Source of the DNA: Perna viridis
Taxonomy: Eukaryota
Length of the DNA stretch: 64,000 bases
Assembly: GCA_037379345.1 (NCBI GenBank)
Contig: CM074521.1
Span: 19,492,704 to 19,556,703 of the forward strand
Direction: 5' to 3'
The position numbers and the translations under genes are program-made. Under the pieces are notes generated by a model. That model was not told where the DNA came from and did not search any database. It saw only the letters and a program-made list of their open reading frames with translations. This document shows, one piece after another, positions 2,615 through 48,846 of the stretch (its first letter is position 1; each line of letters starts with the position of its first letter).

Positions 2615-2629
2615 GGTGATAGCGGGTGG

Positions 2630-13486: not shown

Positions 13487-13530
13487 GACTGTTACAATAT
13501 TTTAAATGAAATGGTATCTGTTTTATTATC

Positions 13531-13561
13531 ACTGATGTTTTTTTTTCTTTTGTAGGTAAGT
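13531..13561 (+). promoter_or_regulatory. Putative recursive splice site (ratchet point) 1
   Basis: actgAt branch-like motif, 14-nt pyrimidine run (13538-13551), then gtAG|GTAAGT with the junction at 13555/13556. Confidence 0.6.
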
Positions 13562-15530
13562 GTTAAGGATAGATAACGGCATTATTTATACAGAGAATGT
13601 AAGTTTTGTATGGAGAAAGCTCTCCGTGCTTCAGTAGAGGTTGTATCTGGTAAGGAACCTCCATCTCTTGTGATTTCTTTGTTAGGTATGTCATTGTAAA
13701 GTATCAAAAACCTTCTCATCTTATGTCGCACACGTAGCTAAACAAAATCTATATTGATAGAATAAGGAGCTGTAAGATTTTTTTAAAAATGTAGGATTCA
13801 AATTTTTTAGAACAGAGTCAAAGTACTGATCTCCTGAGTCAACTGATGTGAAAGAGAATGATGTGCAACTTATATAAATTTCATTGCAATACATAACAGT
13901 AAATTGGCAAAAAATCCTAGTAGATAGTTGTAATATAAATTTAGACTTGAGTTATAGTGTCTGTCATTCTGTTGTTCATATTTTTTTTTCCATACAACAC
14001 CAGTCCAGAATTTTCTTAATAACTTGCTAAAGATTACCATATTAAAATGGTAATGAAAGAAAAAAAAAGGAGATATTTGATACAGCCATTCCTGGGGCTC
14101 GAATGAGTGTTTGATCATTGTGTGATTTTTTTGCTAAAGACACTTGTCACATTAAGGGTTAACTTCTGTGACAATTCAAATCTTTGATTTTAAATTGACA
14201 AGAAAGCAGGGAGATCAACATTCTTAATGGCAAAGAATTAGACATGCCAAATAGGATTTCTGAAGCTTATATCAGGAGATATGCAGAAAATGCTGAGTTT
14301 TATGTTTAACACATGTTGTAAACTTGGATCTATTGCTTGCTTAAGACAATTTTATTACTACATTGTAACTTTTGAATGACACAGTTGACTGATCAATACT
14401 CAGTTGTTATCTGTAATATTATCTGGGGCTGGCAGATAACTTTGTAGAGTCTACCCTTATCAGGGATTTACATGTGATATATCTGATACATGTACATGTA
14501 TTTTTGACATAGTGGTTACCACAATTACCTGGCACATTTAGAATTAACATTTAATTTTTGTAAGGTAAGAACAACTGACTTCATCAGATTTTTTTCTAGA
14601 GAAAGAAATTGTAGTATGGCATATCTAGAAAATCTTCTTCCTGTAGGTTTTAGGCTTAAGCTATTCTGATGCATTCATGTACTTGACTTGGTTTAGAAAA
14701 AATACTAGCAACGTGATGACATATTTGATTGCTGATCTTAAATGAAACCAAATAAGCATTTTTCAGTGGATTTTGGAAAACATTGTTGTGTTGTAGTTTG
14801 ACATCTATAAACATGTATTTCATGCATTGTAGGGAATGAAATTGATCAATGGCGTAGTCCCTACCTTTGTACTTAGAGTTAGGCTCCTTATTGTCAAAAT
14901 CAAAACAATGTTGCCAAAAGGAAGGCATTTTTTCCCAAGTCACATTACAAGCTCACCTGGTTTTCTAATTTGAAACTTATCAGCCATTACTCTATCTTTT
15001 ACATCATTTACATGTACATACTGCATGTTAGGCTATAGTGCATCTCATACTAACTTCTAGTATTTAAGTACTAAGACTGCTAGGAATCCAAAGTCCATCT
15101 AGATCATATGTGAATTAATTTTGAAAAAGTGATAAAAACCTAAAACTTTCTCGTCTTATAGGGAAAGAGTGTCCGCTAGATCCTACATATATTGGGACTG
15201 AATATAAATGGCATACACATGACATGCATAATTTGGAAGTGATTTTTTTCAACATTAACCCTGGCACATAATGGGTTTTTAAGGAAGCCTCATATATTCC
15301 TGATTTTTTGGACATACATATAATCAGTTATTTGAGCACAAATAGTATATTATCTGTACAGAACTTCTTTAAAAATTTTAATCTACAATTTTTGAATAGG
15401 AGAGTTATAATTAATTACATATGCAGCATAATCACAAATTTCACTGAAATCTAACTGAAGAAATCAGGAAGTTTGCATACATGTACCTTCTTTTGTTGTC
15501 TAGGCCTTTCAGAGCTTACTTAAAGGTGCC

Positions 15531-15630
15531 CTTACACTAATGTAGAAGACTTTTTAGTGATCTCAGAAAGTATTTACTATTTTGGTTTTATTTTATAGGT
15601 TGATGCATTTGTTGCATTTTATACCATATC
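15531..15630 (+). repeat. Dispersed repeat fragment with a second copy at about 38357-38455
   Basis: gaagac.tttt.gtgatctc.gaaagtatttactatttt is shared by both loci. Confidence 0.6.
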
Positions 15631-16572
15631 TACTTTTCATTGATTTCAAGATGTTAGTTTCTCTTTAATTGTATTATGTAAAAATAATCTCAAGGCTATT
15701 CAAGAGTGATGACCCAGTAACAGGTGTGTTCCCTATTCCTAATATGCAATGAATTCTTTGTTCCTTTTTGCCATTTAATATTTAAATATTACATGTTTAT
15801 GAAGATGTTATCACACTTTAAAGAATCTCTTGTTCTCATCTGTTTTCCTGCTCTCGGATGGAAATATTGATAGAAAATGAGCCCATTTTGGTAATTTTGT
15901 TGATAGTATCGGAACCTATATGCAAGGAAAGATGCATATTTAAATATAGGGTGTTATGGTTGTAGTATTCAAAGTAGGATTTTATTTCCATTCATACAGT
16001 TACTGAGCTTTGATGAGCTGCATTCATAGTGTTTAAACTTGCTGCTGACTGGACCAAATGGCATGTGGGGTGGTAACATAGGTACAACACTTCTGCCAAA
16101 CTTTGGCCATCATCTTTAAGCTCCCCCATGAATGGTTAAGTTGGCTAATTTCTGACTCAATTGGTCACAATTAAACTGGTCCCTGATTAACCTAGGAACC
16201 CTTGTAAACCTTCATGTTTTGTCTTTCCTATCAGATAATACCTGTTCTAACTGAAAACCAATTTTCTGTTCTGAAGGGATCTGGATTAAGTAGTTTTTTT
16301 TCCCCATGGGTCATAAAATAGGACCAGCCAACTAGTCCAGGAGAAGTAAGTTTTCAGTAGGATTAGAAGAGTGAATTTAGGCAAGTTCTATTTTCCTTTT
16401 GGTCAATAAAATTTAGTTAAGGATTGGTTATTTTAATTGTCTATTAGCCTTTTTAGCAACCTTCAAAAAATTTGCTTTTGCAACTTAAGTTTGTCAAAAG
16501 GAATAGGACTTTCTCTAACAGCTACCATTTTATCTTCAGTCTTCTTGTATCCTTGATCAGCCTATTATATAT

Positions 16573-17610
16573 GTATAGTTGAGTGTGGTGGACCTATATT
16601 CTTAGGGATACTTTACACATATACGGTTGAGTGTGGTGGACTTGTATTCTCAGGAATACTTTACACATGTACAGTTGAGTGTGGTGGACTTGTATTCTTA
16701 GGGATACTTTACATATATACGGTTGAGTTTGGGGGATTTGTATTCTCAGGAATACTTTACCCATGTAAGGTTGAGTGTATTGGACTTGTATTCTCAGGAT
16801 ACTTTACACGTGTATGGTTGAGTGTGGTGGACTTGTATTCTCAGGGATACTTTACACATGTATGGTTGAGTGTAGTGGACTTGTATTCTCAGTGATACTT
16901 TACACGTGTATGGTTAAGTGTGGTGGACTTGTATTCTCAGTGATACTTTACACGTGTATGGTTAAGTGTGGTGGACTTGTATTCTCAGTGATACTTTATA
17001 CTTGTATGGTTAAGTGTGGTGGACTTGTATTCTCAGGGATATTTTACACATATACAGTTGAGTGTGGTGGTCTTAATCTCAGAGATATTTTAGGTATGTA
17101 TGGTTGAGTGTGGTGGACTGGTTATCTCAGGAATGTTTCACAGTTGTAATGGACTTGTAATCTCAGGGATATTTTAGGTATGTACGGTTGAGTGTGGTGG
17201 TCTGATTATCTCAGGGATATTTTACATTTGTAGTGGACTTGTAATCTCAGGGATATTTCCATATGTATGGTTGAGTGTGGTGGACTTGATATCTCAGGGA
17301 TATTTTACATTTGTAGTGGACTTATAATCTCAGGGATATCTTCTATCTCGCATATCTTCTATAATTTTCGACAATGTACCTATATTGTATATATGTATGG
17401 TTGAGTGTGGTGGACTCATCTCAGGAATATTTTACATATGTAGTGGATTTGTAATCTCAGAGATTTTTCCTTATGTATTGTTGAGTGTGGTGAACTTGTT
17501 TTCTCAGGGATATTTGACATAAGTACAGTTGAGTGTAGTGGACTTGTTATCTCAGAGATATTTCTCATATGTAAGGTTGAGTGTGGTGGAGTTGTTTTCT
17601 TGGGGATATT
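16573..17610. repeat. 48-bp minisatellite (about 22 units), distal part mixed with a ~35-bp deletion variant
   Basis: Unit tggttgagtgtggtggacttgtattctcagggatactttacacgtgta. Confidence 0.95.
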
Positions 17611-20567
17611 TTTTCAACATAAAATACTCAAAACATGTAACAACTTGCTTCAAACAGAGTTAATCTACAATTTAAGAAGATCCTATATGTTTTGAAATAC
17701 ACATAGACTGCTGAAATGAGCAAAGTTAGTATTTGTAACATTCTCCAAACAGAATTTGTTCATGTATCCTATTATGTACTTGCAAAGAAGTCTCTTACTG
17801 ATCCTGATGTCTATTAAATTATCTTTTTTCTTGGTATGGCTACCAAAATCTAACCATTAATTTGTCTCCAAGTACTGCATCCTTTCAATCAAAACTGTCC
17901 TTTAGATTATTCTTTTACTAGTAATCAAAATTATTTATGGGTTATTTCCCTTTGATACAACAGTAAACAAAAACACATAATAGTAGTTCATGCACTTGCA
18001 ATCAAAATAAGGTATTGTTTTATGAGAAACCTGAGCAATAATATGTTAATATGATACGAGGTTTGCTTTTTATAGTTTATTCAGGTGAAACCCAAGGTCT
18101 ACTTGTTAATTTTATTTTTTGTAGGTCAAGGACATTTATATTGTTCAATAAAAAGTGAGGTTAAAGGCTGTTTGATCATTGATTTTTTTTTCTGTGTCCT
18201 TTCAGCTATTCCCTGTTGACTGTTCCACAAGCTCTTAATAATTTGTGTTTGGTATTTAAGCCTAGTTTTAAGATTATCATTAGGAGTGAAGATTACAGTG
18301 ACTGGGGGATTGTCTCTAAATAAAGGCATTGTGATGAAAAAAAGAGAATTGGCCAATTTTATTGATATTCAGAATTTCATTGAGACATTATTTAACAATC
18401 TAATGTAAAAAAAATGATTTCAGCTGAAATATGATATATGGTACATGGCTTCCTCTCATCCAATTCACCATTGGAATTTGAATATGTGAATTTTGTGTGG
18501 TGGATACCAGTACTTTCAGAGCATATATTTCCTATTTTCATCTGCCAATCTGTGTGTGGCAATTTCTAGTTAAGTCGAAATTCTTTGCTTGGAATTTGGA
18601 CATTTTTTCAACTTTCTCCTGAATTCTTAAAGTAAAAAAGGAATTGATCAGGCTTTATTATATTTAAACAATGACTGCCAATTGCTATAAATGTTTTCAT
18701 AAAGCTTAAGGGTCTTTTTAGTATGCCATGCTCATGGATATTAGAGGTCACAACTTATCAGAGTGATCTGTTTCAATAATGCCTTGTAAAACCCCCCAAA
18801 AAATGTTGGCACAGAAAAACAACATAAGATCACACTGTTATTTTGAAGGAAATAGAAGATCTTTTTTTCAGAATTATGGCTAATGAAGTCATGTGAGTCT
18901 AAGTGAAATGGAAGTACATCTACCTTGGTATTTAACAACTTTCAAGATAAGTCTTGATTCCATGGAGAATTATCAACTTATTCTACACAATTAACTTTCT
19001 ATTACCTGACACCATGTTGTGTATAGCTTTAACACCCATTATTAACTTGTACATGGTACACTCATGCTGTGTTATGTTTAAGGAGCTTTTTGTAATATGC
19101 ACATTTAACTGGCACATGATGTAATATATCAATTATTTTCCCATTGCTTTGAGAATTTTTATAATGGCCAAGTAGTCCTCTTAATATATAGGTTTTTCTT
19201 GTACATATTTATTATTAGAACTTACAAGAGTTGATGTCCTTAGTTGCTGTGTATATGTTGATTAGGTCAGTCATTGAATTTATTTGTGTATTATGTTATT
19301 TTAATTACTACTTTTCTGTTGTGATAGATGACAGTTATCATAATGGTACAGAAGTCATAAAAATGTTTGAAAGAGTGATGTTATTGTAAGACTTATTTCC
19401 CTTAAAGGACAGAAGTGAAGCCATAGAGTATTTGTTTAGTTAAATCATTCTTTCACTTTCCATTCTCTTATGTAGTGGGCATTCTTTGTGGTAAAAGAGC
19501 AGGCAACTTGCCTATTCATTACAGTTTTAAAACTTTGTTGCAATAAATAGCTATGAGCTGTCTAAAAAAAATGGGGAAAACAAATCTAATGCATTAATAA
19601 ATTTTCTATGTATTAAATAAATATTTCAAGTATAATTGTAAAATGTCTGTGCTCCAAGCTAATGTTGTTAATTGGAAAAAATCCTTGGAATTATATAGGC
19701 ATTAAGTATCACTGACCTAGAATTTATACTACTTGGTTATATATTTTATGCTGTACAGACCTAAGGTAGAAATTTGTCCATTAGGGACAGCTGTATGTTA
19801 CTGATTATAAATAGGAATAGTCTCCAATCTCATGAGTTAGGCAAGGAATAGACACAGTTTATGCAAAGGTTTATTGTGTAAACATATCCCACCAATTTTA
19901 ATGTTAAAGGATATCAGCAAATTTAAACTTTCCAATATTTTTTTTAACAATATTTTTTATATGAATTTTTTTGTCACTGACATTATTAAATTGAAAATCA
20001 ACATAAAATCAAACAGACATTCAGTGAAATAATTTTGTTAATTTATTTGGCATCCCTTAGTGTTTCTTCCTAGAAAACATTTTGATAATCAAATTTATGG
20101 AACTTGCCTGCCTCTGGCTTCTGCAAAACACAAACTAATGTATTATGTCAGACTAATGGCCTTCATGTCACATATTTATCAATTAAGTAGTGTCTATCTG
20201 ACTTGATTTGAGGATTCCTCGTTTTCTGACAATTATTGATGAGCTTTTTGAGGGATATTTAAAGATATAATAGTAATTATAACACCACATAACATTAGAC
20301 AATATTTCAAGACAAGGTCACAGTATTTGTTAAAGATATACAAGATTTTAATCCTAAAGCCATAAAAATGGGTTTGTTAAGACAAAAAATGTGCTTAATA
20401 TGAACAAAAAAATTTCTAAATCAACTTATATCCTCTCCTTTAGATGCGTCAGGGCTTAAACTAGAAGAATCCAATTAAGGCAAAGTTTAGATGACCATAG
20501 AATGAGACCCTTCAGCAACACCATGTCCTGATTCTGGGCCAAGAAAGTTCTCTTCACAAAAAGAAAA

Positions 20568-21892
20568 TTTGTTTTTGTCCATTGGTATTTCCCGCATTGT
20601 TTTGTCCATGGGTATTTCCAACATTGTTTTGTCCATGGGTATTTCCAGCATTGTTTTGTCCATTGGTATTTCCAGCATTGTTTTTGTTCATTGGTATTTC
20701 CAGCATTATTTTTGTACATTGGTATTTTTAGCATTGTTTTTGTCCATTGGTATTTCCAGCATTGTTATGTCCATTGGTATTTCCTGCATTGTTTTTGTCC
20801 ATTGGTATTTCCAGTATTGTTTTGTCCATTGGTATTTACAGCATTGTTTTGTCCATTGATATTTCCCGCATTGTTTTTGTCCATTGGTATTTACAGCATT
20901 GTTTTTGTCCATTGGTATTTCCAGTATTGTTTTGTCCATTGGTATTTCCATCATTGTTTTGTCCATAGGTTTTTCCAGCATTGTTTTTTGTCCATTGATA
21001 TTTCCAGCATTGTTATGCCCATTGGTATTTCCAGCATGCTTTTATCCATGGGTATTTCCAGCATTGTTTTGTCCATTGGTATTTCCAGCATGTTTTATCC
21101 ATGGGTATTTCCAGCATTGTTTTTGTTCATTGGTATTTCCAGCATTGTTTTTGTACATTGGTATTTTTAGCATTGTTTTTGTCCATTGGTATTTCCAGCA
21201 TTGTTATGTCCATTGGTATTTCCTGCATTGTTTTTGTCCATTGGTATTTCCAGTATTGTTTTGTCCATTGGTATTTACAGCATTGTTTTGTCCATTGATA
21301 TTTCTCGCATTGTTTTTGTCCATTGGTATTTACAGCATTGTTTTTGTCCATTGGTATTTCCAGTATTGTTTTGTCCATTGGTATTTACAGCATTGTTTTT
21401 GTCCATTGGTATTTCCAGTATTGTTTTGTCCATTGGTATTTACAGCATTGTTTTGTCCATTGGTATTTCCATCATTGTTTTGTCCATAGGTTTTTCCAGC
21501 ATTGTTTTTTGTCCATTGGTATTTCCATCATTGTTTTGTCCATCTGTATTTCCAGCATTGTTTTTTGTCCATTGATATTTCCAGCATTGTTATGCCCATT
21601 GGTATTTCCAGCATGCTTTTATCCATGGGTATTTCCAGCATTGTTTTGTCCATTGGTATTTCCAGCATGTTTTATCCATGGGTATTTCCAGCATTGTTTT
21701 TTCCATTGGTATTTCCAGTGTGTTTTATCCATGGGTATTTCCAGCATTGATTTTTCCATTGGTATTTCCAGTGTGTTTTATCCATGGGTATTTCCAGCAT
21801 TGATTTTTCCATTGGTATTTCCAGTGTGTTTTATCCATGGGTATTTCCAGCATTGTTTTGTCCATTGGTATTTCCAGCATTGTTTTGTCCAT
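20568..21892. repeat. 27-29 bp minisatellite (about 48 units) with higher-order duplication
   Basis: Unit tccattggtatttccagcattgttttg. It accounts for all ORFs between 20456 and 21934. Confidence 0.97.
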
Positions 21893-21977
21893 CAGTTGCC
21901 TCTCATGTTTATGTTAGATATTGCTACTTTTTAATAACCATATGAAGAAAGTCATATTGATTTTTAATGAAAATTGT

Positions 21978-22121
21978 AATAGTACCTGCTTTAGGGTAAA
22001 TAGTACCTGCTTTAGGGTAAATAGTACCTGCTTTAAGGTAAATAGTACCTGCTTTAGGGTAAATAGTACCTGCTTTAGGGTAAATAGTACGTAAATAGTA
22101 CCTGCTTTAGGGTAAATAGTA
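21978..22121. repeat. 21-bp tandem repeat (about 6.5 units)
   Basis: Unit aatagtacctgctttagggta. Confidence 0.95.
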
Positions 22122-22589
22122 TTTTATGTCTACAGCATATTTTTTATACCTCATGGCAGGGAATAAAAATTGTTTATGGTATACTCAGTTTTGAACTTCT
22201 ATTACCATTCCCTTACATAGTGATGTTGAGAGGAGATATTGTTTCTCTCAACTTCTGAATAATATTTATTATATTTGCCATCTGTCATTTATCAATAAGG
22301 GTCATATTGGTCGCTGTATAGACAGGATGTAGAAATTAGCTAGAATTAATAATTCCAAAATTACTTGACAAGTTTTTCCTGTATCTTGGGTATTGTCCAC
22401 AGAGTTTGACCAATCGATTGTATACTGGGCAATCAGGAGAGATTTATTAGTTATTTGTATTTGGGAGAGGGCATAAAATAAAAGGTCATACAATGCAGTT
22501 TTGTCAATATTTCATTCAATCTGTATTCTCTAGTTTAACAGTTAAACTACTATAATCAATTGCTTGTAGAGTAATATTCTAATGGTGTA

Positions 22590-22725
22590 TATAGTGAACT
22601 ACCTCTCATGATCATATGTAACAGGTGGTCTTTATATACAGGTAAACTTTACCAAGAATGCACTACTAAGGGATAGTTTGAAGACAGGTTATTGCTAAAT
22701 ACTGGTGGTCACAAAGACAGATATG
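22590..22725 (-). mobile_element. Fragment of the same MITE family without the tandem expansion
   Basis: acaggtggtctttatatacaggtaaac...aagacaggttattgctaaatactggtggtcac. Confidence 0.55.
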
Positions 22726-25645
22726 TATCTTGTTTTCACATGCATTGTCAGATAGCTTAATTTTCATTCTTTGTTACCCTATATGGTCCCTCATTCCAGT
22801 AAACCCTGAAATTTTTCTTGGCTGTTTTATTTTCACTGTATCTGTGGTAATACCTGTTATGCAAAAATAACACTAATTTTGATACATTTACCATTATTTA
22901 CAAGATTATTATTAAATAGTGGTTTAATACAAGCTTTCTCTGTTTTAGATCAAGATATTTAAATAAGGTCATATTGTCCAGTAATGTAATGGGATTATTT
23001 AATGTCAGTGTGAACATTGAGGCTAATCCGTCCAATATAACGATCTCTGTACATACAATTCAGTAGTTACTACCAAATTGGATAAGCATCTCCTAACAAG
23101 ATAATTCATTATATTGCTCAAGCTATATTGAGCTTGTTAATCTCCTCATTTCATTCTAGTAGTTACCATGACCTTTGCAAGATAAATAGATTCCTGTTTT
23201 TCTGTTGAGCAGAACTAAAAATGGACTTAAAAGACAACATGATTTCAAATTGTTTACAACTTTAGATCACACACAGAGATGTTTGTTTTCATACAAATAT
23301 ACCGCTTAGCAATGAAGCAATGTAATGACTAAATGGTGCATTTCCTCAGTTTTAAAGTATGGTTTCTATTGTATTTTTCTTACTGGTGCTTTGGAACAAT
23401 GAGGAGACTTCTGGATGATTTTGTCCTTCACAGTTCTACATCCAGATGTTATTGAGCAGCAAATTAGCCTTATGGTGCGTTTCCTGCACATAATACTAGA
23501 GTAGTTAAGCCTGATTAGTCTTTATACCACTTCATTACCTCATTTCTAATTTTCTGGCGTCTTTTGCTCATGGTAATAAAGGGAGGTAATGAGCTATTAA
23601 GTTAAAGTTTAGAACAATCAAACTACTGTTGAAGGAGCTCACTGTAAACAATGCCTCTTTTTGTAAGCATGATTAACTGTGGTATTATCTCTCCACAAGT
23701 AAACAACTTCTGAAATCTTTCAAACACATGGTTCAGAAATGATTTCTCTTCCATGACAAGGATTTAAATGCAGCGTGAATTTTATTTTATACTTTATAAA
23801 CTCTGAGTGCATGTATCAGTCTATTTAGAAATCTTGCTAAAACCAATGCAGTAAATTACAATCCAACATTCATTTTTTTTTTATTTTAGAAAACATGACT
23901 TTTTTTTTTTCTTTTTTATCTTAAATGGATGAAAATCATTAAATTATTTTAAAAAAAATTGCCATGCTCGAGCCACTGACTGGGTTGTCCACCGCAGATA
24001 CCACTTAAGTTGTAAGTAACTTGTTAAAAGATGCTTTGATCAGCTGTTTGTTTTTTTAAGGTAGTTCATTAGACAATTGAATTAAGGGTCACATCTGGTG
24101 CTCATGTGATGTTTTCTATTGATTTGGTGCCTCATTAGCAAGTAATATCAAGTTTCATCTGAATCATTTAGTAACATCTTTTCATGTGTAAATAATTGTA
24201 GATTTTTAACCTTAGCATTTGTTGATGCAGCTGGCAGTTAATTTTTGAAAGCTGGAAAATAAGTTGAAGTAGGCCTACACAATTCATGCAGTTATCTTCC
24301 AAAAAAGATTTCTTATATATTTTGCAACTCAACAAATTTACACAAAGTCATGATCAAATTATAATTACTGATTTTGTTATTTCAGCTTTTTAGCTAGTGT
24401 AATTTGAAGTATCATTTTTACTTTTAGCTAGTGTGAATAAAAGTACATTATTTATAGCCTTTTAGCTAGTGTCAGTGTTTTGGCATGCTTCAAACGTCTA
24501 TCTGGCCAGATCAAGTGGTATCATTCAATTAACAATTACAAGTTTTGTCTTGCTAAAATTTAGGAGAAAAAATTATGAAAACACTGAGTGTGATTAAAAG
24601 TACATTATTTTTATCTTTTAAAAGTGACATTATTTATTAAAAAGCATTTATTGTTAGGACTTTAATATTCCAGGTTTTTTACTCAATTTTTCCAAGAAAT
24701 TGACTACTACTTTCGCTATAAATGCTTTAAAAACCTTTTATCTTCTAAAAAGAACATAGCTAGTATGAAGTAATGAAATCCCATGGCAGGAAAAAGCTGT
24801 TTTGTAAAAGTTCAAAAAGGTATTGATGTGCATTTGTTGTAAGCAAACATAATGGTTATAAAATTTTCCTGCTGACATTAGCAGTCTATAACTGTCACAT
24901 AGGGTGCTGATTATGTAATGCTTTAAATAAAATTGCTGAATTGGTAAAACAGTTACTTAGGCCAAAACAAACAATTTCAATAGCTGGTTTTTTTTTCGTG
25001 ATCAAACTGAATTTCAATGAAATTTTGTATTCAATCGAATGTGTATCTGCCTTTCTTTATCGTGTATCTCTGTTTGTTTGTCTGTCCATTCATTAATTTG
25101 ATCAAGGAATATAATGACGTAGGGAGAATGTTATCGTGATGGAAGGACACTCCTATTGGGTTTTTTATAACCCCGACTCCAAATTTTTCATTTCTAGATC
25201 TGAAAGTCTTTTTCTGCAAGGAGTTCTATTATCTGAAATTTTCAATGCTTTTAACAATTCCTTTTATTTAGATCAATGCTTTACCAATACCAAAAAATAA
25301 CGTCTGTTTTCTGCTACCCTTTCTACCTTAATGTTGTGCCTACCCAAAATGTTTTATGGCCATTTTGGCTCAAGCAATGTTAAAGTATAGATTGTTTCTC
25401 CATTAACTCAATGTAAAATGTTTTTTGAAAAATAAAATATAACTTCCCTAACTACCTACTCTATTTTTTTTCTTGCTTGTAGCAGGAAACAATATCTTTT
25501 TGGCATAATGGTTTATATGTAGTTTGAAACTTTGGTAGCCTGAACAGTAAAAAATTGTACTTCCAGCACATTTTCAAGGGTATCAAATTTGATAACGTTG
25601 AGATAAAGTGTATGTATTGGGGAAAAATAGAGAAATTTGATTTAA

Positions 25646-25830
25646 GGTGGTAGACCTTGGGTAAGGGACACAACTCTTACAAATCATTCAAATGTTTATA
25701 TTCACCATTTTACATCAAACTCATGTAATGTTTCAAAGGAAAGCATGAAAGGCTTTGGTGAAATTGAATATGATACAGACATATCACTGATTATTTCAAG
25801 AGCTATGTCCCTTGCCCTAGGTCTACCTTC
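25646..25830 (-). mobile_element. Kolobok-like MITE, same family, inverted and internally deleted
   Basis: TTAA|GGTGGTAGACC...GGTCTACCTTC|TTAA. Confidence 0.82.
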
Positions 25831-28884: not shown

Positions 28885-30980
28885 CAATAAAGGTCAAATT
28901 AATAATTTTCAGTTACATTTTACATCTTTATTAAAAAACAGAAGGATTAATCCAAGAGAAGTTCTCTTTTTTTTTTACTGCCTATCTTGCTATAGTTATA
29001 ATTCTGGTGAGTAGAAGTCTGAAGTTTGGAACATATGGCCATTACTAGTTCTTATCTTTATTACATAAATATTCTTTAATTTAGTTACCTTTTTGTTCTA
29101 TGTAGTAAATTTTTCCTTTAGTCTCTTGGGACTAGCTGAAATCTCTCATTATTCTGTGCTAAAAGATAAAGTAAGCTCAGCTATTGATGATGATGCTTGC
29201 TCTATACATTTTTCCCTCGAGATTCTATTCTGGTCAATATATTCAAGAGAAATGTAAGAATTATGTGCTTGTTTTCTTGATGATCCTTCCCTTTATGTAA
29301 ATTTCGTTCAGATGCATTGTGGGTATTGGTCAGAAGTGATTTTAGTCATTCCATGGGTCAGTGTTGGCCATCAGCAAATATTTATTATTTTCTTTAGTTA
29401 GGAATATAATTTACATGTCTGAAGGAAGTTTTTACTGGCCCTTTTTATAAAAGCACAACAAATTTGCAGCCATATATTGGAATGGTGCTGTGTTCCTTGT
29501 TGTTGGCTTCGTCATCCTGTTTAACTTTTTATGTGATAACTGGAATATTAGTTGGTTGATCTTGAATATTGGTATAGATTTTGGTGGTCCTAGCGCTAAC
29601 TATGTTTGAATAAGGGGCCAAAAAATGACCAAAATCTAATTTCAATTTCATAGATTCTAACAATATAAAGATATTGTTTCTCAAGACTCTATACCATGGA
29701 GATCAGACTTGTGTAGGTTTTGGGGGTTTATACTAGAACTTTTATGTATAACTTGTCAAATTCTTATCCTGTCAAAATTCAGAGCTGTTTCCATCTTCAT
29801 ACTTGCCCAAAGTATTCAGGGTTTGACCTGTGGAGTTTTTAAGTTTCACCCTGCTGGAAGCATTAAATGACATTTGAGATTCAGTCATTTTTACCAAACA
29901 AAGGCCAGTTCTAACTTTCAATTTCTAAAATCTGGAATATTTGGTACAACAAACTTTTATATTACAGAACATGTTTGCAAAAATGCATTTTCTTCCTTTC
30001 CCTCATGTATCGAAGTAAATCTGTTCACAAAGATGGTTGTCATGCCAACCCGACATTATTTATGTTTAGTCCTCCTGTCCCCTTACTGCTTCCAACAAGA
30101 TTGTCTCCAAGACATACTGGATTTAGAAATGTCCTAAGATCATGTCAAGCAGCATTTAAAAGATAATGATGCCAATTTAAACATGAAGACTTATGTTTAG
30201 AGATTTATGCCACTTTGTCTCCTATTATCCTGTTTCCCAAGATAGTTTAAGCTGGCGGCTTTAATTCTAGATAAGTAGAAGAAAAGATGAGAAGGGGACA
30301 TGTCTAGTGCTGTGTTTGGCTCATACAGGGTTGTTTCACTAATCAGATTGTCTGAGATTTACATAATGCTAGTTTTTCCAAGGAATATTTTGTAATTATT
30401 CTGTTGTTTTTGGTATATTTTGACTTTTGATTGAATTTAAATGCTTAGCCAATTTATTCATACAAGTTTAGAGAGATTTTGAACAAATGTGATTGGACTG
30501 ACTTTTCAGTGAAGGAAGAGTTTAAATTCTAAGATTTAAAATTATTTTGTCAACAACTAAATACATATTTTTGTAGTTTTTGGATGTCCTATATTGACTG
30601 AAAGGCATAGGTAGTTTTTATTCTCTTATTGTCATAAGATGAAATCTTAGTTTATATGGCTGTCTATATCAAATAGCTTAAGATTTAAATTATTTAAAAT
30701 AAGTTGAGTGATTCATTATACATCATTAAAATCTCATTAGGCAGATAGAATTGAAGCTCCATTATAGCTAATGATATTTTATATTTTATATGCCTTATAA
30801 GCTTTGCTTTGATTGGCTGTTTCTAAAGGTAAAGACTGATTTAAGGAAATAACTGTCAAAAACACACAATTTTTGACAGTCCTCCAATAGCATCAGGAGA
30901 ATTTCACATGTAGGTTTCTTAAGAAAATTATTGTGGATCTTGGAGTTTTCAGTAGTAAATTTCAATCTATTTTTCTTTAA

Positions 30981-31699
30981 AGCTGCATTAGCTGCCAAAT
31001 TTGTTCAGTTCTGATTCTACTGAATTTTGCTGATTCAAATAAGTTTGTAGTAATACAATTAAAGCAATAAATGCCGATGATACCTTCAAAATATTGTGAA
31101 AACATTGTTTTTTTAATCAAAGAATATTGATCTAATTATTTTTCGCCATTACTTTCGAAGATTACTGCAGGACAATCACCTGAACTACTTTCACTTTGGT
31201 GAAAAAAATAACAATAACGGATACACAGGTAAGCATGTGTCTTGTTTACATTTCATTTAATCTATTTCTTGATTAGTTTTCAAATAAATAATGAAAATTA
31301 CTGATCATATTTGTACCACATTATATCACAATACGTAAATTACAAAAGGATCCTTGCGTTACATTCAAACTTTTTTTTTATGGCTTGAGTCTGTCAGTCT
31401 TACTTGCCATTTATTAACCACTTTAGCTTTGCAATCAGATTTTTTTAAAAGAAGCGACACTTACACCACATGCATGGATTAAGGTCACAAGAAGTTACAT
31501 GCATAAAAAATTATCTAGGTTGACTTTTTGTCTTGCAAGACAATTAATGTATCGACACCTATTTCATGTATTTAATGCATTTTATTTGTGGATATCAAGT
31601 AAAATTGTACTAGAAAAGGGCAATTTAGTAGAAATAATTCAAAGTTAAGATGTATTTCAACATAAACAAAATTGTACAAAAGTGACAGCTAATGCAGCT
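30981..31699. mobile_element. 719-bp non-autonomous Kolobok-like element
   Basis: Perfect 14-bp TIRs AGCTGCATTAGCTG / CAGCTAATGCAGCT flanked by TTAA at 30977-80 and 31700-03. No ORF. Confidence 0.85.
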
Positions 31700-34191
31700 T
31701 TAAGGTTTGACATTTGCATATTTGGGGCTTTAGTTACAGATGCTGCTGCTATTGGTTGGGAGATGTAATGTAGTAATAAAGAAACAATTGTGTAAAAAAA
31801 AACCTTATATAACTTCTCAATCTTCTATGCAAGTCCTATGGAAACTGTTTTAAATACTGATAAAAAATTTTAGAAAGTGAATGATCATGAGGAATTTTAA
31901 TTACAGCAAATAAAATAGTTAACTCCAGGAAGTAGCTTGAATCCTTTGATTGAATGAACATTACCTGATGAAACTTATAGGTACTGGAGTTAAATTGGCA
32001 GATGACAAGGAGTTATTTACCTTCTTTTATTCCTTAGATATTTGAAATTTATGTCTGATAGAATGTTTAAAGGTTAACTACCTTAGTAAATTTATCCAGG
32101 TAAGACTTATCTCTATCTTCTAAAATTAACTATTTTACTTGCTGTAACACTGCCTTATTGATCAATGCAATCATTTGGGCTCCCTTTAGGCAAGTTTATT
32201 TGAACATTTTTGATAGCTTGCGTAAAATTGATTGTTTGAAATATTTAAAGAAATTTATTGGCGTTGAAAATTAATGAATAAACATTTTTGGAGCTCTCAA
32301 CAGCACTGTGAAATTATTTTTTTTAAGATCTAGGCTGATAAACTTAATAACTGTGTTCTATGATCTAATGGCTAAGATGCCTTATTGTAAGTAGCAGTCT
32401 TTCTAAAAATCAGACAGAAGGTGATTCGAGCATGTTAAAAACCCACCAAATTCAGTTTTATTTTTTGTTCAGAAACAGTAACTGATCATGTAACTAGTCT
32501 TCGTTTTATATTTGGGGGTTGCGCTTTTGATATAAAATCATGTAGATTGTAATGGAGTTTGCACTTTTCTAGAATTATCGTTGTTGGTTTGGCTTCATTT
32601 GGTTGATTTTAGTGGGAGATAAAAGTATGATTTTCTAAAAATTGCAGATCTAAATGCAGAAAAGATTGTTGTCATGTGAAAGAACAGAAAATGCATCATT
32701 TATTTGGTGGGTTTTTTCTTGACCATGAATCACTTAACCATTGGCAGTGTCTGAATTTTATGTGGACTGGTACTTAATTACAGTTTTTATTATCAGTGAG
32801 TTTGGGAAAAAATATACATGGCACAAGCTTTATTTCTTAAAAAGCACCATACAATGATGAAAAAACCTTAATTTGACCAATCTAGATGGCAGTCAGAATA
32901 ATTTGAATGTATGACATTTTCCATAGTTTTGCCTGATCTCACTGGCTTAAGTCATCTTATGTCAGCTTTTTCTTGTTGTTGCTAGAATGCTTCTTATCAG
33001 ACACCACTAAACCTTGACCTCTAACCCCTTTTATTAGTTCAAACATGGATGTTTTAATGTAAACATTCTGGCTTATATCAATAGACAAGAACCCAATTCA
33101 ACCCTTTCATAATCAAAAATTGCTACCATTGTGGTATAGATTCATATAGATTGGTATCTTAAACTGATGAAAAACTATTGGAAATTATTTGCCACTGTGT
33201 AATAGGAGATACTCCATGTTGTAGTTATAAAGAGATTATCGCTGTTTGAGGACTCGGAAAACATCTGTTAAAGAGGGAAATCTTATAAAAGTCTATATTA
33301 GCAAATTACTCCTGTATTTAACGATTCACTTGGCTGATTACCTATAGGTAAATGATCACATAATACCACGTAATTTTACCAAGTGATAGGTGTAGAATAC
33401 GTGTACCTGTATTTAAACCACTCTTTATTGAACTTGAATGAGGATTACATACCCAGTGACACAGTGAAATATTTGGATAAGTACTTTATATAGTACTTGG
33501 ATTTATTTTCAACTTTAAAGGTAAGGATTTATGTGATGATATTCTCATACAGATCTTAATTTTATGGTTTAATAGCCAATTTTTATGGTGCATTGAATGG
33601 CAAATAAAACTTGACCCCATTATTATAAAGCAAGTTTCTAGGTCATGTTTTACAGGTTGCTCTGGAAGTTTTCCATATTATTTGATACATACCTATTGCT
33701 TTAAATTTTAGAGGAATTAGTGTGTTTGATCGGGAAGTATTTAGTTTAAAAAAATGTATGTTTGTATTTCGAAATTACATTTGCAATCATCTAATTTATT
33801 CTTGTCCAAAAAGTAGGGCAATTGATGAAAAAATTGCCTCAGGCTGAAAGAAGCAGCTTTTATAATTTGAAATAATAATCAGTAGATTAAAATTTAAATG
33901 CAAAAAAAAAGGAAAATGCTGACTGAAAACTGGATTCATTTCTCTTGGAGCTTTTCATTTAGATTATGTTGAGCAGTATTTGTGAGTTATTAGAAATATA
34001 AATTATTTCTGTGACAGTCAAAATTAAAGACTGAAGTAACAGGAAAGTCAGACTAGAAATTTAGAATATTTTTTTTTATATGCAGGTTTTTATTTAAACC
34101 AGAAATGAGGTTTCTTTCTATAAAAAATATAAACTGTATGTTATATGTATGTAACAGAGAATTCATTTTTGTTTCCAAACAGTTTAAGCCT

Positions 34192-34428
34192 TGTAATACA
34201 TCTATTCATCTGAACCTACCTACATGTAATACATCTATTCATCTGAACCTACCTACATGTAATACATCTATTCATCTGAACTTACCTACATGTAATACAT
34301 CTATTCATCTGAACTTACCAAAATGTAATACATCTATTCATCTGAACTTACCAAAATGTAATACATCTATTCATCTGAACTTACCTACATGTAATACATC
34401 TATTCATCTGAACTTACTTACATGTACC
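34192..34428. repeat. 33-bp tandem repeat (7 units)
   Basis: Unit tgtaatacatctattcatctgaacttacctaca. Confidence 0.95.
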
Positions 34429-35900
34429 TACTCAAAACTTTCAGACATGAATTCGAAAGGGGAAACAAACATAGTCTTAAGGCTGGCCTTTTTTATATTG
34501 TATCAAGTTCTGTTGAATGATTCTTCACTGAGGAAGTAAACCATTTTATGCTTGGTGAACTCCTATATCAAAAACCTTTCTATGTTAATAAAACCACTGT
34601 GCCATGTTATAGTTAAAGTGACATGTCTTTCAGTGAATTATATGTCATATTAATGAGACACTAGTGGACACTGTAGTTGACCAGGTAAGATTACTTTGGG
34701 TTTTCTTTTTGTGTTGAAAACAAACAAAATACAAGTGATCTGTTGCAATATCAGTTTTTTTTTTTTTTTGCAAAAGGTTGGAAAATGTCAAGCAAAACTT
34801 TGATGTAAAACTATAATTTTCAATAATTTTGATGTATTAAGAATCTTGTTTAGTGACTGTATATTGTTAACATATTAATTTTCAAGGTTGTTAATTTTCA
34901 CGGATTCTGTCAGGTGAACACATTAACGGGTATTTTCGTGGTTTCAAAAAATGGTTAACATTTAAAAGTGTATAAAATCAATTTTGTGGGTACTATTTTT
35001 CACGATTTTCTGCCCAATGTGAAATTAGCAAAAATTAGTATGTTTGCAGTACGTGAATTATAACATTATGTAATGGAAATATTAGGCTCACCAGTCTTCT
35101 GTTTCTACTGATTAATGATAATTTTCCATTGAACACCTAAACAACACCCCCTCCACTGCCACCACTCCTGCCTTACAAAAGCATCACATGGTAGTATGAC
35201 AGACCAATATATTTCATCTGATGAGCAGATAAAATTTTGTGATCATGTGAAATTCATGTGAAGAGAAGCCTTGATATGAAATTTCTGTGAATCTCACATA
35301 AGTTTTAAATTTCACATAAACTTATTACGTATATGAAAACTTATATGAATTTCACTTGAAGCTGAATTCACATGAATTTTTGCCTTTGTAAAATATGAAA
35401 TCTTGTCAGAACCAATTCAATCAATCATAACTGCATTTATATGATTTTACTCCCTCTAAACAAGGAAAACCACTCAGTATGACTCTAATCAGCTGGACAA
35501 TATTTAACCATTCATTTCCATGAAATTATTGTTAAGTATGGATTGATATTCAGTAGAGAAGGGGGTAACAGGTTCAATAGACTCCTGTTCTACAATCTCT
35601 TGCCTTTTTGTATTGATATTTTATGTACATCTATAGACTACAATCTCTGGGCATAGAAAACAATATTTTTTTTCTCATTTAAGTCCTAGAGGAACAATGA
35701 TAAATATCAGAATCCCAGCATGCTATGTTTAGCTCTGTATGTTATATGTAAAGTATTGTATTTTGTCTTATTGATCAGGCGCATTATAAATGATGATGCT
35801 TTTGGGTAGATATATCTGTGAACAAGTTCTTTAGCTATGACATGCAAATATTGAAATAATAAAAGACATTTTATCATACGTGATCGATGTTCACTCTATT

Positions 35901-36049
35901 CAGGGCTGGATTCAGACACTTTGAAAAGGGGGTGGTGGTGGTAGGACATTATTTACCATTTTCTTGCAAATTTTACACATGAAAATGACAAATTTTTCAA
36001 TAAAAAGGGGAGGTGCCAACTGCCTGCACCCCCCTCTGAATCCCCACTG
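35901..36049. mobile_element. ~150-bp MITE with G/C-rich subterminal tracts
   Basis: cagggctggattcaga / tctgaatccccactg imperfect TIRs. A similar decayed element lies near 56005-56155. Confidence 0.55.
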
Positions 36050-38029
36050 ATATTGATAATCTTTTTTTTTTATTAATATTTTACATCTATAATTATTTTA
36101 TTCTTAGTGACATTGACATGCTGATATGTAATTATAGATCACATTGGCAGTTCATTCTGGATTTCTCTTATTGATCACTGGTATTCTTGCTTCACATGTT
36201 GAGTCTTTTTATACAAGTCTGTTGTTTACATTTGAGAGCCATCGTTTAGGTATTTTTTTAATGTAAATTTTAACCTACATCTAGGCTTTCTACTATACAA
36301 ATAAAGAGTGTTGAATAACGCAGAGCTTTATTTCGCCACTGCATAATAATATCTCCTGGTTACCTTTTCATTTATGAGCAACATCAAAAACAGGAAACTG
36401 GTAACGAGTTTAAAGGTGTATGTATTAACCACTGCGCTCAAAAGATTGCTGAAAAAAATATACTTTTTTTGGCAAATTTTGCATGTTTATTTTAAAAATG
36501 TAGTTGCAGGATAAAAACAGACATGAACACTGTCGAAAATATCAATATATTTATTTGTATTCACTCCAAAACAGTCAGATTAGCTCGGGAAACCCTCGTG
36601 ATCTGACTGTTTCTAAAGCTTGTCAAATAAATTTGATATTTTCTATCAATATATATGTGTTGTATATTTATGTGTTAGGTTAGTCTTTATTTCAAGTATT
36701 GCAACAACATTTATTTCAGCTTTTATATTTCAATGACTTGTATTTTCTTGCTCTGGAATTAGCTAAAATAAGTTGGTTTACAGAATCTTTGTTTTTGTTA
36801 TTATTGGACATACATGTACATGTACCTGTCTCTAAGACTGATCTTGTCAAGTGAAGTATCAGTAATCAGCCTGAACAGCTGCTACTTTGTTTTTGTTCTG
36901 TTTCTTGCACTGTTGTAAATCTCTGATTCATGAATTTCCATGACAATCTGATCTTTTGGAATTGGGAACAAGAAAGACAGATCAGCCTCTTTCTAATTAT
37001 TTCTTTTCATGTGGAGCCAGTATTTGATTTTTCTGTGGATTTCTACTGATCATGACAGATTTTACTGAAACTGAAAGGGAATGGCTTTCTATCTTTGAAC
37101 AGTATCTGGCAATCATCAGACTTGTTTTAGAGTTGTTTGGGATTGTGGATATTTGTTGTTTATTTATGGAACACTAATTGATCATTTGTTACATCTCTGA
37201 CAGCTCACTATTCTTTATGCCAGCAATTATTGTTCTGTTACTTCTACAATTTAAGAAATTTTGTGTAATTTGAGTGTGATTGGACATGAAGTTTTCATAT
37301 AAAAGCTTGAATTTTCATGCTGCTATTTCAGCTCATTCTCTTTGACGGTTATTGAATTGATTACTTTACATAAACATTATACTAATTTAATGTGTGAGAC
37401 GGTTTCAGATTGTGTTAGGCTAGGATGTTAAGTTTCTAATGCTTGGTGTCTTTGACAGTATTAGATAATGGGAGTATTATTTACACATATCACAATACAT
37501 AACCTTTCCATCACTAATGAAAAACCTGTAGTGGATAATTTTTGCCGGTTGCTAATTTTTGCATATTTTAGTCCAGAAAGGCCAACATTTTTTACATTGG
37601 GCTTCAGTACTCAGTGCAATTCAGGAACTTCAATCAAAATTTTTTTGTATACCTTTTTGCTTTTAAATTTTACACCCACCAAAATAATATGCATTGGATT
37701 TAGGATTACAGCCATTTTGTAAGCCTGCCTTTTTAGGGACATATTTTCAGCTGTCTGCTTGTTTCTCGGTCCAGACCTCATATGAAAATTCAAAAATGCA
37801 TAAGAGGATTTAATATTGTTTTGGCATAATGTTTGTCTTCATGAAAGGAAACTGTTATTTTAGTTTTGTCAATTTTGGCAGTTACAAATATTCCAAGATC
37901 TTCCCTACTTCTCTATAGTTAACATTCTTATATGTTGTGGTTGTATCTCTTGACCCTATTGTAGAGTATTTAATGGGTCTGCTTCATGTAGAACATTGGA
38001 TACCCTATTTTTTGGACAACACTGATTAA

Positions 38030-38239
38030 GGAGGTAGACCTGGGGTAAGTGATATAACTTTTCAATCAGTGATATGTTTGTATCATATACAATTTCATGA
38101 AAGCCTCTCAAGCTTCTCTTTGAAACAGAATGAAATCAAACCCAGTTACTTTGATGCTGCCATGAGATGGTATAAAATGGTGAATACAAACGTTCCAATG
38201 ATTTTTAAGAGTTGTGTCCCTTACCCCAGGTCTACTACC
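38030..38239 (+). mobile_element. ~210-bp Kolobok-like MITE
   Basis: TTAA on both sides. TIRs GGAGGTAGACCTGGGGTAAG / CTTACCCCAGGTCTACTACC. RR..YY termini with a TTAA target fit Kolobok rather than piggyBac. Confidence 0.85.
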
Positions 38240-39852
38240 TTAAGTTAAATAATTGTCTACTGTTCTACCAAAGCAATATACTATGGTTGGATTACACAGA
38301 AACAAAACAAATTTTACTTTTAGTTGTTGTATTCTATTAGATAACCACTGGAATTGTTTACACTTATTGAAGACCTTTTGGTGATCTCTGAAAGTATTTA
38401 CTATTTTGTATTTAGATTATATGCTGGTGCATTTGGTTGTTTTTCACCATATACCATATTTTTTTCCTATAAAAATCTTGAATTTCCTGTTTCATGACAT
38501 GTAGCAGTCAAAATGTGGTGTGACTTATGAGAATGGCTGACTGATTAGTTGAATTTATAATCAAGCAACAGGAAAAAAGTAGAAAAACTTTGAGCAGAGC
38601 TCACTTAAGGATACCCCCGCTCTTCTACCCAGTAACCATATGGTCAAAAAGACGAAACATAATATTGCTTCAGTCTGAAATCAGATCCAACAATATTGCA
38701 TACCTATATAAAACTTGTGTTAAAATATCAAGTGGCTTTGATATGTAGTGGAAAATAAAACTACAAAAAGTAGTGAATGGAAGAACAGATGCATGGACAT
38801 CATGACACTATGATCACCATATACCTTCCAGTGACATGTGGAAGGGGGAATGTTATAATAAAAATGTAAATTGTTTAAAGAATCTGTACATATTAAATTT
38901 TGAAACGCTTGTTTAGAAGGACAAGCATGTGCAACAATCAGTTTTCATATGTGTGCTTTGAATTGTATGGAATTATAGATCTGATGTTGGTAACCTCCTG
39001 TTACAATTGATATAAGTAACAAGGTTGGTGGTATCTGTGTCTGTACACTTGAGTTATTTTGATCAAAGAGTTATCGTCTTATCATAACTTCCTATTGAGA
39101 GTGATTTATCGAAATCACAGGAAAATTGGAAATATGACCAATCTGTGTAATACCAAATTACATTTATGTAATCTATGATTGTGATTGGTTTAGATCTAAA
39201 TCACTCATGATTTTTTCTACCATACTGTGGCACAATACAGAGTATCACTATATTATATTGTTAGGATATCGGTAACACAGATTTTTTTTAAATTGTAAAT
39301 TTAGTGATTGGTAAAAACCCTGCATTATAGATTTTTTTTCTATTAATGTGCTCAATGTCAATGAAGTTTTTGTAAATTTGTAAATTATGCAACTATGAAC
39401 TTGATTTAAGAAGTAGTGATTGCTTCTGAAATTACAGTAGACTGATGACTTTAAGATTTCTAAAAGCCATTATTTTTTATTTTATTATTTTTTATTTTTT
39501 GGGGGGGGGAGGTGGGCTGGGGTTGGGGATAAATAGAGTTTATTAAGTTTATCAGGAAATGACATTTTTGTACTATCAATAGACTCACAGATGAAGCAAT
39601 GAGTTATAATATGAAAAGTTGCATTGTTAAATATTTAATGTGTATGTTTTTGTTGAACTTCATATGATGCTCTGCAGCTGAATTTATTAGCTCAAATGAA
39701 GTGAAAATATGATAAAACTACAATGGGTTTCTGTGTGTATAGCCAGGCCACGTCTTTGTGATCACTATGTTTGTTTAACAAAAACCTTTTATAATTTGTT
39801 TGTTTTTAGTGGCAGTAGACATTGATTGCTGATATTTATGTACAAATTTTAA

Positions 39853-39881
39853 TTAATCTTTTCTCTCTTTTTCAGGTAAGT
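39853..39881 (+). promoter_or_regulatory. Putative recursive splice site (ratchet point) 2
   Basis: ttaAt branch-like motif, 17-nt pyrimidine run (39857-39873), then cAG|GTAAGT with the junction at 39875/39876. Confidence 0.65.
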
Positions 39882-41112
39882 AAAAGCTTTAAAGATCAGA
39901 TGACAAAAGGTGAAATGTTGGGTCAGTGTAAACACGACAGATATTTGGTCATGGATTAGTTTCGATCAAATTTTACACATTGTGTTACAAACTGATTAAG
40001 TGTCCTTCATGGAATATTTAAATATAGTGAAACACAGTCTTTCTGTATGGAGTAAAACTTTGTAGAGGTGTTTTGTAAGTTGATAAAAATGTTCAAAAGT
40101 CTACATGTGGGTAGGCATAAATCCAAGGTAAGGACAATTTATTTTTCCCCTTTTGGTATAACATGTATTTAATTCATAACTATGCAAAAAAAAAAATGGC
40201 TTGTTGAAGGTTGAATTTCGTAATCTTTAAATTAGGTCAATATTAGGGGCCAAGTAATCAATCTGATTATCATGAAACTTTAAAAACTATCTACAGTATT
40301 ATTAATTTTTTTTGTGAATTCTTTATGAATTGATTATCAATTTCATTACAAAGTCAATATTGAAAACCACATTGTCAGGTTCCATTAAATGTGTATTAAC
40401 GAAGGCTAAAACTTCAATCTGAAATCTGAAGTTTGAATTCTCAGTTACTTGTAGTAGATTTATAAGTTGGTATCCATGAACCATTTTTAGTTATTGTATG
40501 GTAAAAATTTCTTCAAGTTGTATTCTTAGCTACCAGAATTGGTTTGTCACTTTTATACTGTGACTTCCATGCTGATAAACTTGTCTGGAATAAGTTTTGA
40601 ATTTACTATTTTCTAATTTTGCTTTAATTTTCATACAGCTTGACCAGTGTGGAAAAACATGTTCTCATCACTAGTGACTTTTTTGTTCTCAGAGTTTGAT
40701 TGGCTTAGAAATCTATTGTCTTGGACTCCATCTTGAATCACTTCGATTGCCATTGTAGTTATATTTCAGTTAAATGAGATAATTTTGGTGTTTTCTAACC
40801 TTAAATGAGAACTATGAAGGGACTCTGGAAGATTTGAAGTGAAAAAACCTTTGAAATCATCTGTTTTCCTTTGTTTGGGAAAATCATTTTTATGACACAT
40901 ATAGTGAATGGTGGTCAAGCAAGCAAGGGGGGGAAATCATTTTTGTAACACATTTCAGTTTCTTCGCAACTTCTAATGGCAGCACCTTGATTTTTGGTAT
41001 CCAGCATCAGGTACAGGTCCCATATGGTTGGATATGATTTCAGGACTGTCTACTTCCTGTTTAAAGAAATTCTCCCATTTCTGCCTTTGACCCATGTGAA
41101 ACCATGTGACCC

Positions 41113-41440: not shown

Positions 41441-41481
41441 CAGCACAGCAGTTCCTTGCTATTACCTAATACTCTGTAATA

Positions 41482-48821: not shown

Positions 48822-48846
48822 GTACTTTATTGAACAAAAAAAAGTC

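Follow-up and report, generated by a model that had tools for sequence, protein, structure and literature searches.

To our knowledge, experimental proof of recursive splicing is confined to Drosophila and vertebrates, and these two differ in the strength of the motif and in how common recursive splicing is. In Drosophila, ratchet points (zero-nucleotide sites) were reportedly described by Hatton in 1998, Burnette in 2005 and Duff in 2015, and the associated cryptic recursive-splicing exons (RS-exons) by Joseph in 2018. Full-text searches gave no paper on recursive splicing in molluscs, only incidental co-mentions. Here, we describe three candidate ratchet points in the 78-kb first coding intron of a putative AMPK-gamma (PRKAG2-like) gene of the bivalve Perna viridis. 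The window, i.e., the whole stretch of DNA analyzed, comprises 64,000 nucleotides (contig CM074521.1 of assembly GCA_037379345.1, positions 19,492,704 to 19,556,703 of the forward strand); positions are counted from its first letter, and negative positions lie upstream of it.

Ratchet points are defined by the consensus (y)nncag|gtaagt together with an excess of the motif on the sense over the antisense strand (PMC2773006). This excess is 21.7-fold in the fly, 8.2-fold in the sea urchin, 8-fold in the beetle, 4-fold in the bee and about 1 in vertebrates, with the mosquito also reported, and fly introns of >50 kb carry 2.2 ratchet points per 100 kb (PMC2773006). The cryptic RS-exon of flies is ~50 nt long and usually out of frame (Joseph & Lai 2021, PMC8605326). 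For mammals, the summary in the same source notes only nine fully suppressed intronic ratchet points definitively (PMC8605326).

The Perna viridis intron resembles the Drosophila systems in its consensus ((Y)nNCAG|GTAAGT), in the placement of several sites on the sense strand of one very long intron, and in the short, out-of-frame cryptic exon (usual in flies) with a weaker downstream donor. Its site density is 3.8 per 100 kb, compared with 2.2 in fly introns of >50 kb (PMC2773006). It differs from them in that the host is a bivalve, the sites are known from sequence, and the motif lacks the genome-wide excess that is ~20-fold in flies. Vertebrate RS-exons (Sibley 2015, Blazquez 2018), as summarized in PMC8605326 and PMC6110456, likewise involve exon definition with a downstream donor and competition between the regenerated donor and that of the RS-exon, and their inclusion is harmful. 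Unlike the intron studied here, with its optimal, fly-like GTAAGT and long pyrimidine tracts, long vertebrate introns are not enriched in ratchet points (PMC2773006). Shepard et al. (2009; PMC2773006) found an excess in long introns beyond flies, which makes recursive splicing outside flies plausible; their work consists of statistics over many introns and includes no mollusc, whereas ours concerns a single RNA-backed intron in detail. Among fly genes, SNF4Agamma (FBgn0264357), which belongs to the orthologous gene family, is listed with a high-confidence recursive site, detected with the saw-tooth method within an intron of 13.6 kb (Pai 2018, PMC6110457 S1 Table), although the parallel between the introns may only reflect long 5′ introns in both genes.

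To delimit the host intron, we aligned assembled RNA-like Logan contigs from four studies with the upstream exon; such contigs drop rare forms. One contig (run X4) follows the upstream exon to L008:9711 and then continues with 30 letters identical to window positions 57738 to 57767, which sets the junction at donor L008:9710/9711 and window 57737/57738. The same donor is also the end point of contigs in three other runs, with tails of 25 to 28 nt, and in all four studies contigs cover ~0.9 to 1.2 kb up to this donor and stop there. As this contig shows the donor at −20290 spliced to position 57737, the intron is real, lies on the + strand and comprises window positions 1 to 57736 entirely, on the sense strand. 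It is a phase 0 intron that extends from −20289 to 57736 (G000:C11:19472414-19550439). The original prediction had thus rightly placed the region within the transcription unit and on its sense strand, whereas the >57 kb that it gave for the intron must be replaced by an actual length of 78,026 nt.

The features on which the analysis turns are as follows.

Positions 1..57736, + strand: window part of the intron of the AMPK-gamma long-N-terminus isoform (contig junction).
L008:9516-9710 = G000:C11:19472219-19472413, + strand: upstream coding exon (tblastn with the Pinctada imbricata N-terminus).
Positions 57737..58265, + strand: conserved coding exon (DLSAFAVPLMDGG...) on which the intron ends (homology and contig junction).
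Positions 13532..13555, + strand: acceptor half of the second of three candidate ratchet points (CTGAT as branch-like motif, pyrimidine tract, TAG).
Positions 13556..13598, + strand: candidate cryptic RS-exon of 43 nt with an in-frame TAA, opened by the ratchet-point donor GTAAGT (13556-13561).
Positions 13599..13604, + strand: AAT|GTAAGT, the second donor, with which the 43-nt cryptic exon would end.
Positions 39853..39875, + strand: acceptor half of the last of three candidate ratchet points (TTAAT as branch-like motif, pyrimidine tract, CAG).
Positions 39876..39909, + strand: candidate cryptic RS-exon of 34 nt, frame-shifting if included, opened by the ratchet-point donor GTAAGT (39876-39881).
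Positions 39910..39915, + strand: AAG|GTGAAA, the weak second donor, with which the 34-nt cryptic exon would end.

On the + strand, the window contains just two AGGTAAGT octamers, at 13554-13561 and 39874-39881, and each follows a pyrimidine tract (14 and 17 nt) and a branch-like A, as originally described. When the scan covered the window and 200 kb upstream of it, a third identical sense-strand site appeared at −3270 (ctttttttgttttcag|GTAAGT); both predicted sites stand, and the number in the intron rises from two to three. At site 13556, CTGAT (13532-13536, with the A at 13535, i.e., at −21) precedes a 14-nt pyrimidine run (13538-13551) and G-TAG|GTAAGT. At site 39876, TTAAT (39853-39857, with the A at 39856, i.e., at −20) leads into a 17-nt pyrimidine run (39857-39873) and a CAG that ends at 39875. 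All three sites have 15 to 17 pyrimidines in 18 positions, the core YAG|GTAAGT, and CTGAT, TTAAT or CTAAT ~20 to 25 nt upstream. They lie 17.0, 33.8 and 60.2 kb into the intron and would divide it into segments of 17,019, 16,826, 26,320 and 17,861 nt; the last two of these agree with the predicted spacing of the two window sites and the predicted distance from the second site to the acceptor (last intron base, 57736). In their sequence, the three candidate ratchet points have the defining form of such sites, a 3′ splice site juxtaposed with a 5′ splice site of the form GTRAGT at AG|GT.

Scored with generic splice matrices (not species trained), the acceptor halves reach 6.9 at 13556 and 8.5 at 39876, compared with 2.7 for the proven acceptor at 57737, and the value of 8.5 is the highest among the 321 scored sense AG|GT positions of the intron. 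The donor halves score 9.0 (−3270), 6.9 (13556) and 9.0 (39876), whereas the proven donor scores 7.8. Judged from the sequence, the CAG at the end of the upstream exon would give CAG|GTAAGT at every ligation step. A fourth sense-strand motif, tttttctcatttcag|GTAAGT, is present at L009:3749 (window −36251, G000:C11:19456452), with a second donor ATG|GTAAGG at +25. It was not counted as an intron site, as ~15 kb separate it from the apparent first exon farther downstream; a longer isoform transcribed from an upstream promoter may include it, or it may be due to chance.

The number of octamers carries no signal in itself. The window contains 4 AGGTAAGT octamers on both strands versus 2.23 expected from shuffles, which is at chance level, and the two on the − strand (34280 and 34379) sit within a 33-nt tandem repeat (34192-34426) with purine-rich upstream sequence and no pyrimidine tract. 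The signal instead resides in the coupling of the donor motif to pyrimidine tracts. Of 322 sense AG|GT positions in the intron, 11 are preceded by at least 14 pyrimidines in 18 positions; GTAAGT follows the AG in 3/11 of these versus 0/311 of the others. Under another definition of an acceptor-like site (at least 15 pyrimidines in 18 positions plus YAG), the sense strand of the intron holds 36 acceptor-like sites and 22 GTAAGT hexamers, from which 0.010 coincidences are expected and 3 are observed (Poisson P = 1.7e-7), with GTAAGT the commonest hexamer after acceptor-like sites. A 2-by-2 test based on the generic matrices points the same way (Fisher p = 5.7e-4). The antisense strand of the intron has no coincidence of an acceptor and GTAAGT. 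Both statements of the original prediction on this matter, namely, that the octamer count alone is uninformative and that the coupling is what counts, were thus confirmed, and the equally strong antisense motifs that it had named as a counterindication did not turn up.

We then considered the sequence immediately downstream of each site, where a second donor is found. Its quality was compared with that of random intron positions having a donor as good or better 15 to 80 nt downstream.

Site −3270: second donor AAG|GTAGGA at +38, with ~3% of random intron positions as good.
Site 13556: second donor AAT|GTAAGT at +43, with 4.4% of random intron positions as good.
Site 39876: second donor AAG|GTGAAA at +34, with 10% of random intron positions as good.

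The second donors score 4.6, 4.2 and 2.6 at −3270, 13556 and 39876, compared with 9.0, 6.9 and 9.0 for the respective ratchet-point donors. The resulting exon lengths (38, 43 and 34 nt) are all indivisible by three, and an in-frame stop is present in the exon of 43 nt. Hence, a short, out-of-frame candidate RS-exon with a weaker donor is present at each site. A frame-preserving microexon at 39876 was ruled out, as its length of 34 nt shifts the frame.

Comparable sites occur in the pearl oyster Pinctada imbricata, whose orthologous intron of 28.7 kb carries two on the sense strand, at 18729 and 35426, whereas its antisense strand has none (Fisher p = 0.013). Site 18729 reads cag|GTGAGT and is followed by a second donor, AAT|GTAAGT, at +42. 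Site 35426 (on L026) reads tttcttttgtag|GTAAGT and could be the start of a 148-nt exon with a strong donor, AAG|GTAAGT, at its end. The latter site aligns with Perna viridis site 13556 over 41 nt, including a common 18-mer (tttcttttgtagGTAAGT), with a score of 41, whereas none of 24 motif-matched controls scores above 31, which suggests that the two are orthologous. Orthology of −3270 and Pinctada site 18729 is not claimed, as their alignment score falls within the range of the motif-matched controls.

We propose, with a probability of roughly 0.6, that −3270, 13556 and 39876 are Drosophila-type ratchet points and that the 78-kb first coding intron of AMPK-gamma is removed by recursive splicing. 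From the intron and its strand, the motifs with their excess and uniqueness, the second donors and the partial conservation, all of which are observed, we infer that the sites are used. During transcription, the branch point, pyrimidine tract and YAG would be recognized together with the weak donor 34 to 43 nt downstream, so that a short cryptic exon is defined. The upstream exon (...CCACAG) would then be joined to the G of GTAAGT, and the first segment of 17 kb would leave as a lariat. This ligation would restore a perfect CAG|GTAAGT donor that outcompetes the weaker donor of the cryptic exon, and the next splice would start from the restored donor. Repetition of the cycle would yield four lariats of 17.0, 16.8, 26.3 and 17.9 kb and leave no trace in the mRNA. 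The predicted intermediates consist of the upstream exon, ...TTAATCCACAG, joined to GTAAGTGAAAAT, GTAAGTGTTAAG or GTAAGTAAAAGC. In genome coordinates, sites −3270, 13556 and 39876 correspond to G000:C11:19489433, 19506259 and 19532579, respectively.

Several observations weigh against this proposal. The assembled contigs, which drop rare forms and cannot show slopes, contain neither a junction of the exon with GTAAGT nor a lariat, and saw-tooth coverage was likewise not seen. Among the donor loose ends listed, the canonical junction is the only one (18 further ends are outside that list), and a search of short open reading frames (ORFs) for intermediates with the upstream-exon peptide returned only intron read-through (NPQ-VR...), from Perna viridis and relatives. 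The stepwise removal put forward in the original prediction is backed by the transcription unit, the strand, the coupling, the unique sequence, the second donors and Pinctada, while its intermediates were not obtained from the contigs. Conservation, which had been suggested as a check, gave a similarly divided answer: Pinctada has two sites, one of them alignable, whereas the orthologous intron of Elysia chlorotica (54.8 kb) has no strong site and, in another bivalve lineage, the 20 kb that precede the conserved exon contain none. In the genome as a whole (723 Mb, both strands), the strict motif Y10-N-YAG-GTAAGT has 26 matches, two of which are 13556 and 39876, and the motif does not exceed its reversed control (26 versus 36 strict matches and 146 versus 221 one-mismatch matches). 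Recursive splicing would therefore be rare in the Perna viridis genome, and the excess of sites holds for the AMPK-gamma intron only, not genome-wide. At the level of the sites, the second donor of 39876 is weak, the weakest of the three (score, 2.6; top 10% only), and the splice scores come from matrices that are generic.

The main rival, mechanistically close to the RS-exon model, is a set of frame-breaking alternative exons. The three sites would then be the acceptors of alternative or poison exons of 38, 43 and 34 nt whose occasional inclusion, through a frameshift or an added stop, cuts the output of the AMPK-gamma long isoform, and the GTAAGT at the start of each exon would tune inclusion and have no part in stepwise removal. 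We consider this unlikely. It accords with the plausible downstream donor and frame-breaking length at every site, with the in-frame TAA at 13556, with the 148-nt exon that Pinctada site 35426 could open, and with the existence of expressed RS-exons in flies and vertebrates (PMC8605326). It does not explain why three acceptors should begin with the optimal donor hexamer (0.010 expected), which is unexpected for cassette exons, and the observed spliced contig is a direct junction without any such exon. Moreover, the ratchet-point donor is stronger than the exon donor at every site, a relation that predicts skipping in flies.

A further possibility is that the sites have arisen by chance, with pyrimidine tracts common on a T-rich sense strand and three octamers that happen to follow them. 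The chance-level octamer count, the lack of a genome-wide excess over the reversed control and the lack of such a site in Elysia all agree with this. So do the other 24 strict genome matches: only 3/24 have a comparable second donor, and one of these three is a tandem repeat, so most of the 24 are probably noise, from which the AMPK-gamma locus stands out. Yet chance predicts 0.010 coincidences where 3 are observed (and 0 on the antisense strand), and it accounts neither for the second donors nor for the comparable Pinctada sites, of which one is alignable. It also sits poorly with the clustering of relaxed matches (14 nt with at most one non-pyrimidine and an intact core), of which there are ~45 genome-wide and 3 in the AMPK-gamma intron (P ~4e-5, corrected for all 78-kb windows); the total of ~45 was counted by hand from the 146 one-mismatch matches and is partly extrapolated, over 46 matches that were not listed. 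On balance, we regard chance as improbable.

U1 telescripting is an established protective role of U1 in long introns. Unspliced landing pads for U2AF/U2 and U1, e.g., for the suppression of premature cleavage and polyadenylation, would be consistent with a long intron that contains a perfect U1 complement, but we find them hardly credible here, as they need no adjoining branch point, pyrimidine tract, YAG or second donor, and the exact AG|GT juxtaposition is what defines resplicing sites (PMC2773006).

A wider claim, put forward tentatively, as possible though somewhat doubtful, is that fly-type recursive splicing operates in molluscs and that one site or more has persisted since this bivalve's lineage split from the pearl oysters. 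If true, resplicing through zero-length exons would be an ancient means by which bilaterians deal with giant introns and not a specialty of insects, and the AMPK-gamma 5′ intron would undergo recursive splicing in flies as well as in bivalves. A case from the lophotrochozoans with fly-like sites would bear on the question of whether bilaterians inherited the mechanism from their common ancestor and would show how animals rich in long introns, such as molluscs, keep splicing accurate. The locus is a clean test bed for such questions: it combines a proven 78-kb intron, three unique sites, precise predictions of junctions and cryptic exons, and a Pinctada ortholog.

Two other strict genome matches, both on the + strand, are followed by a strong second donor exactly 40 nt downstream and are further ratchet-point candidates by sequence, namely, L035 (G000:C2:33605637; TTG|gtaagt) and L051 (G000:C12:651145; AAG|gtagga). 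The strict motif also occurs twice on the + strand at G000:C4:41377660 and 41445305, 67.6 kb apart and with near-identical flanks; this pair is a segmental duplication and not two independent sites.

At the 5′ end of the intron, the upstream exon encodes MSNFLNVPEQGNARPRRRSL...INPQ in phase 0 and ends in CAG|GTAAGG at −20290, 20,290 nt before the window. Coding of the long isoform truly starts in this exon, which corrects the gene model by placing the first coding exon 20.3 kb upstream of the window; within the window, tblastn with the N-termini of Pinctada, Argonauta and Elysia gave nothing convincing. It is probably also the first exon, with a long 5′ untranslated region: RNA contigs start raggedly at L008 8522-8831, reaching at least 1.0 to 1.2 kb upstream of the donor, and the observed-to-expected CpG ratio is modestly raised at −22 to −21 kb, near the upstream exon. 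Across the block, the ratio is low (0.17 to 0.3), and this, together with T>A and G>C skews, fits a methylated gene body transcribed from the + strand.

At the 3′ end, the exon beginning at 57737 is kept from bivalves to cephalopods. Its conserved peptide DLSAFAMPL begins exactly at the acceptor, and coding therefore continues from the upstream phase 0 exon. PF00571 (CBS) matches lie at C11:19606143 and 19607372 (+ strand), ~49 to 51 kb beyond the end of the window, and Pinctada and Argonauta have the same N-terminal exons followed by a CBS gene. The AMPK-gamma (PRKAG2-like) label, proposed at the outset from the window sequence, is thus reasonable, given the same-strand CBS exons downstream of mollusc-conserved N-terminal exons and the same order in the two other species. 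In Argonauta, the AMPK-gamma gene spans 356 kb.

The conserved exon has alternative donors at 58265, 58387 and 58509 because its end is triplicated: window positions 58162 to 58531 hold the exon end and its donor (CAG|GTAAAT) in three in-frame copies of 123 nt. A genomic Logan contig of the same species has only two copies of the 123-nt unit, so the copy number is either polymorphic or collapsed in assembly. This contig (P0001/L002) was ruled out as a transcript, being genomic DNA of the same species with the two-copy allele of the exon-end repeat.

Pinctada differs in some details of the 5′ region. Its exon 1 and conserved exon are separated by a further exon of 60 nt (38862-38921); given the direct junction in the Perna viridis contig, the major form in Perna viridis lacks an equivalent. 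The N-terminal exon also occurs in Pinctada as a second, 53% identical copy 7.3 kb upstream of exon 1 (L026:2678-2821), which may be a duplicated alternative first coding exon.

Finally, we surveyed the repeats and other possible contents of the intron. A repeat origin of the ratchet-point candidates was rejected, as 13556, 39876 and −3270 are all unique in the genome, as are the 400 nt around 39876, and repeat families end 50 to 100 nt upstream of 13556 and −3270. Interspersed repeats of ~100 to 130 nt with ~90% identity occur at window positions 13357 to 13486 and at L006:6530-6632; first-look candidates for genome copies of these two families number 439 and 2137, respectively, and the 439-candidate family ends ~50 to 70 nt upstream of site 13556. 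No Pfam family scored above cut-off in the intronic ORFs, which gives no sign of a nested gene, and the window has no Rfam match to a known RNA. The intron contains six minisatellites (20569-21892, 16571-17339, 45215-45723, 34192-34426, 41112-41440 and 28508-28882). The first three (27 nt × 48, 48 nt × 14 and 25 nt × 21, respectively) give rise to spurious long ORFs, and the 27-nt array at 20569-21892 also underlies a local peak of T>A skew. Upstream of the first coding exon, a repeat of ~200 nt at L008:6809-7029 reaches a summed contig depth in the thousands in all four RNA-like runs and is an abundantly transcribed interspersed element.

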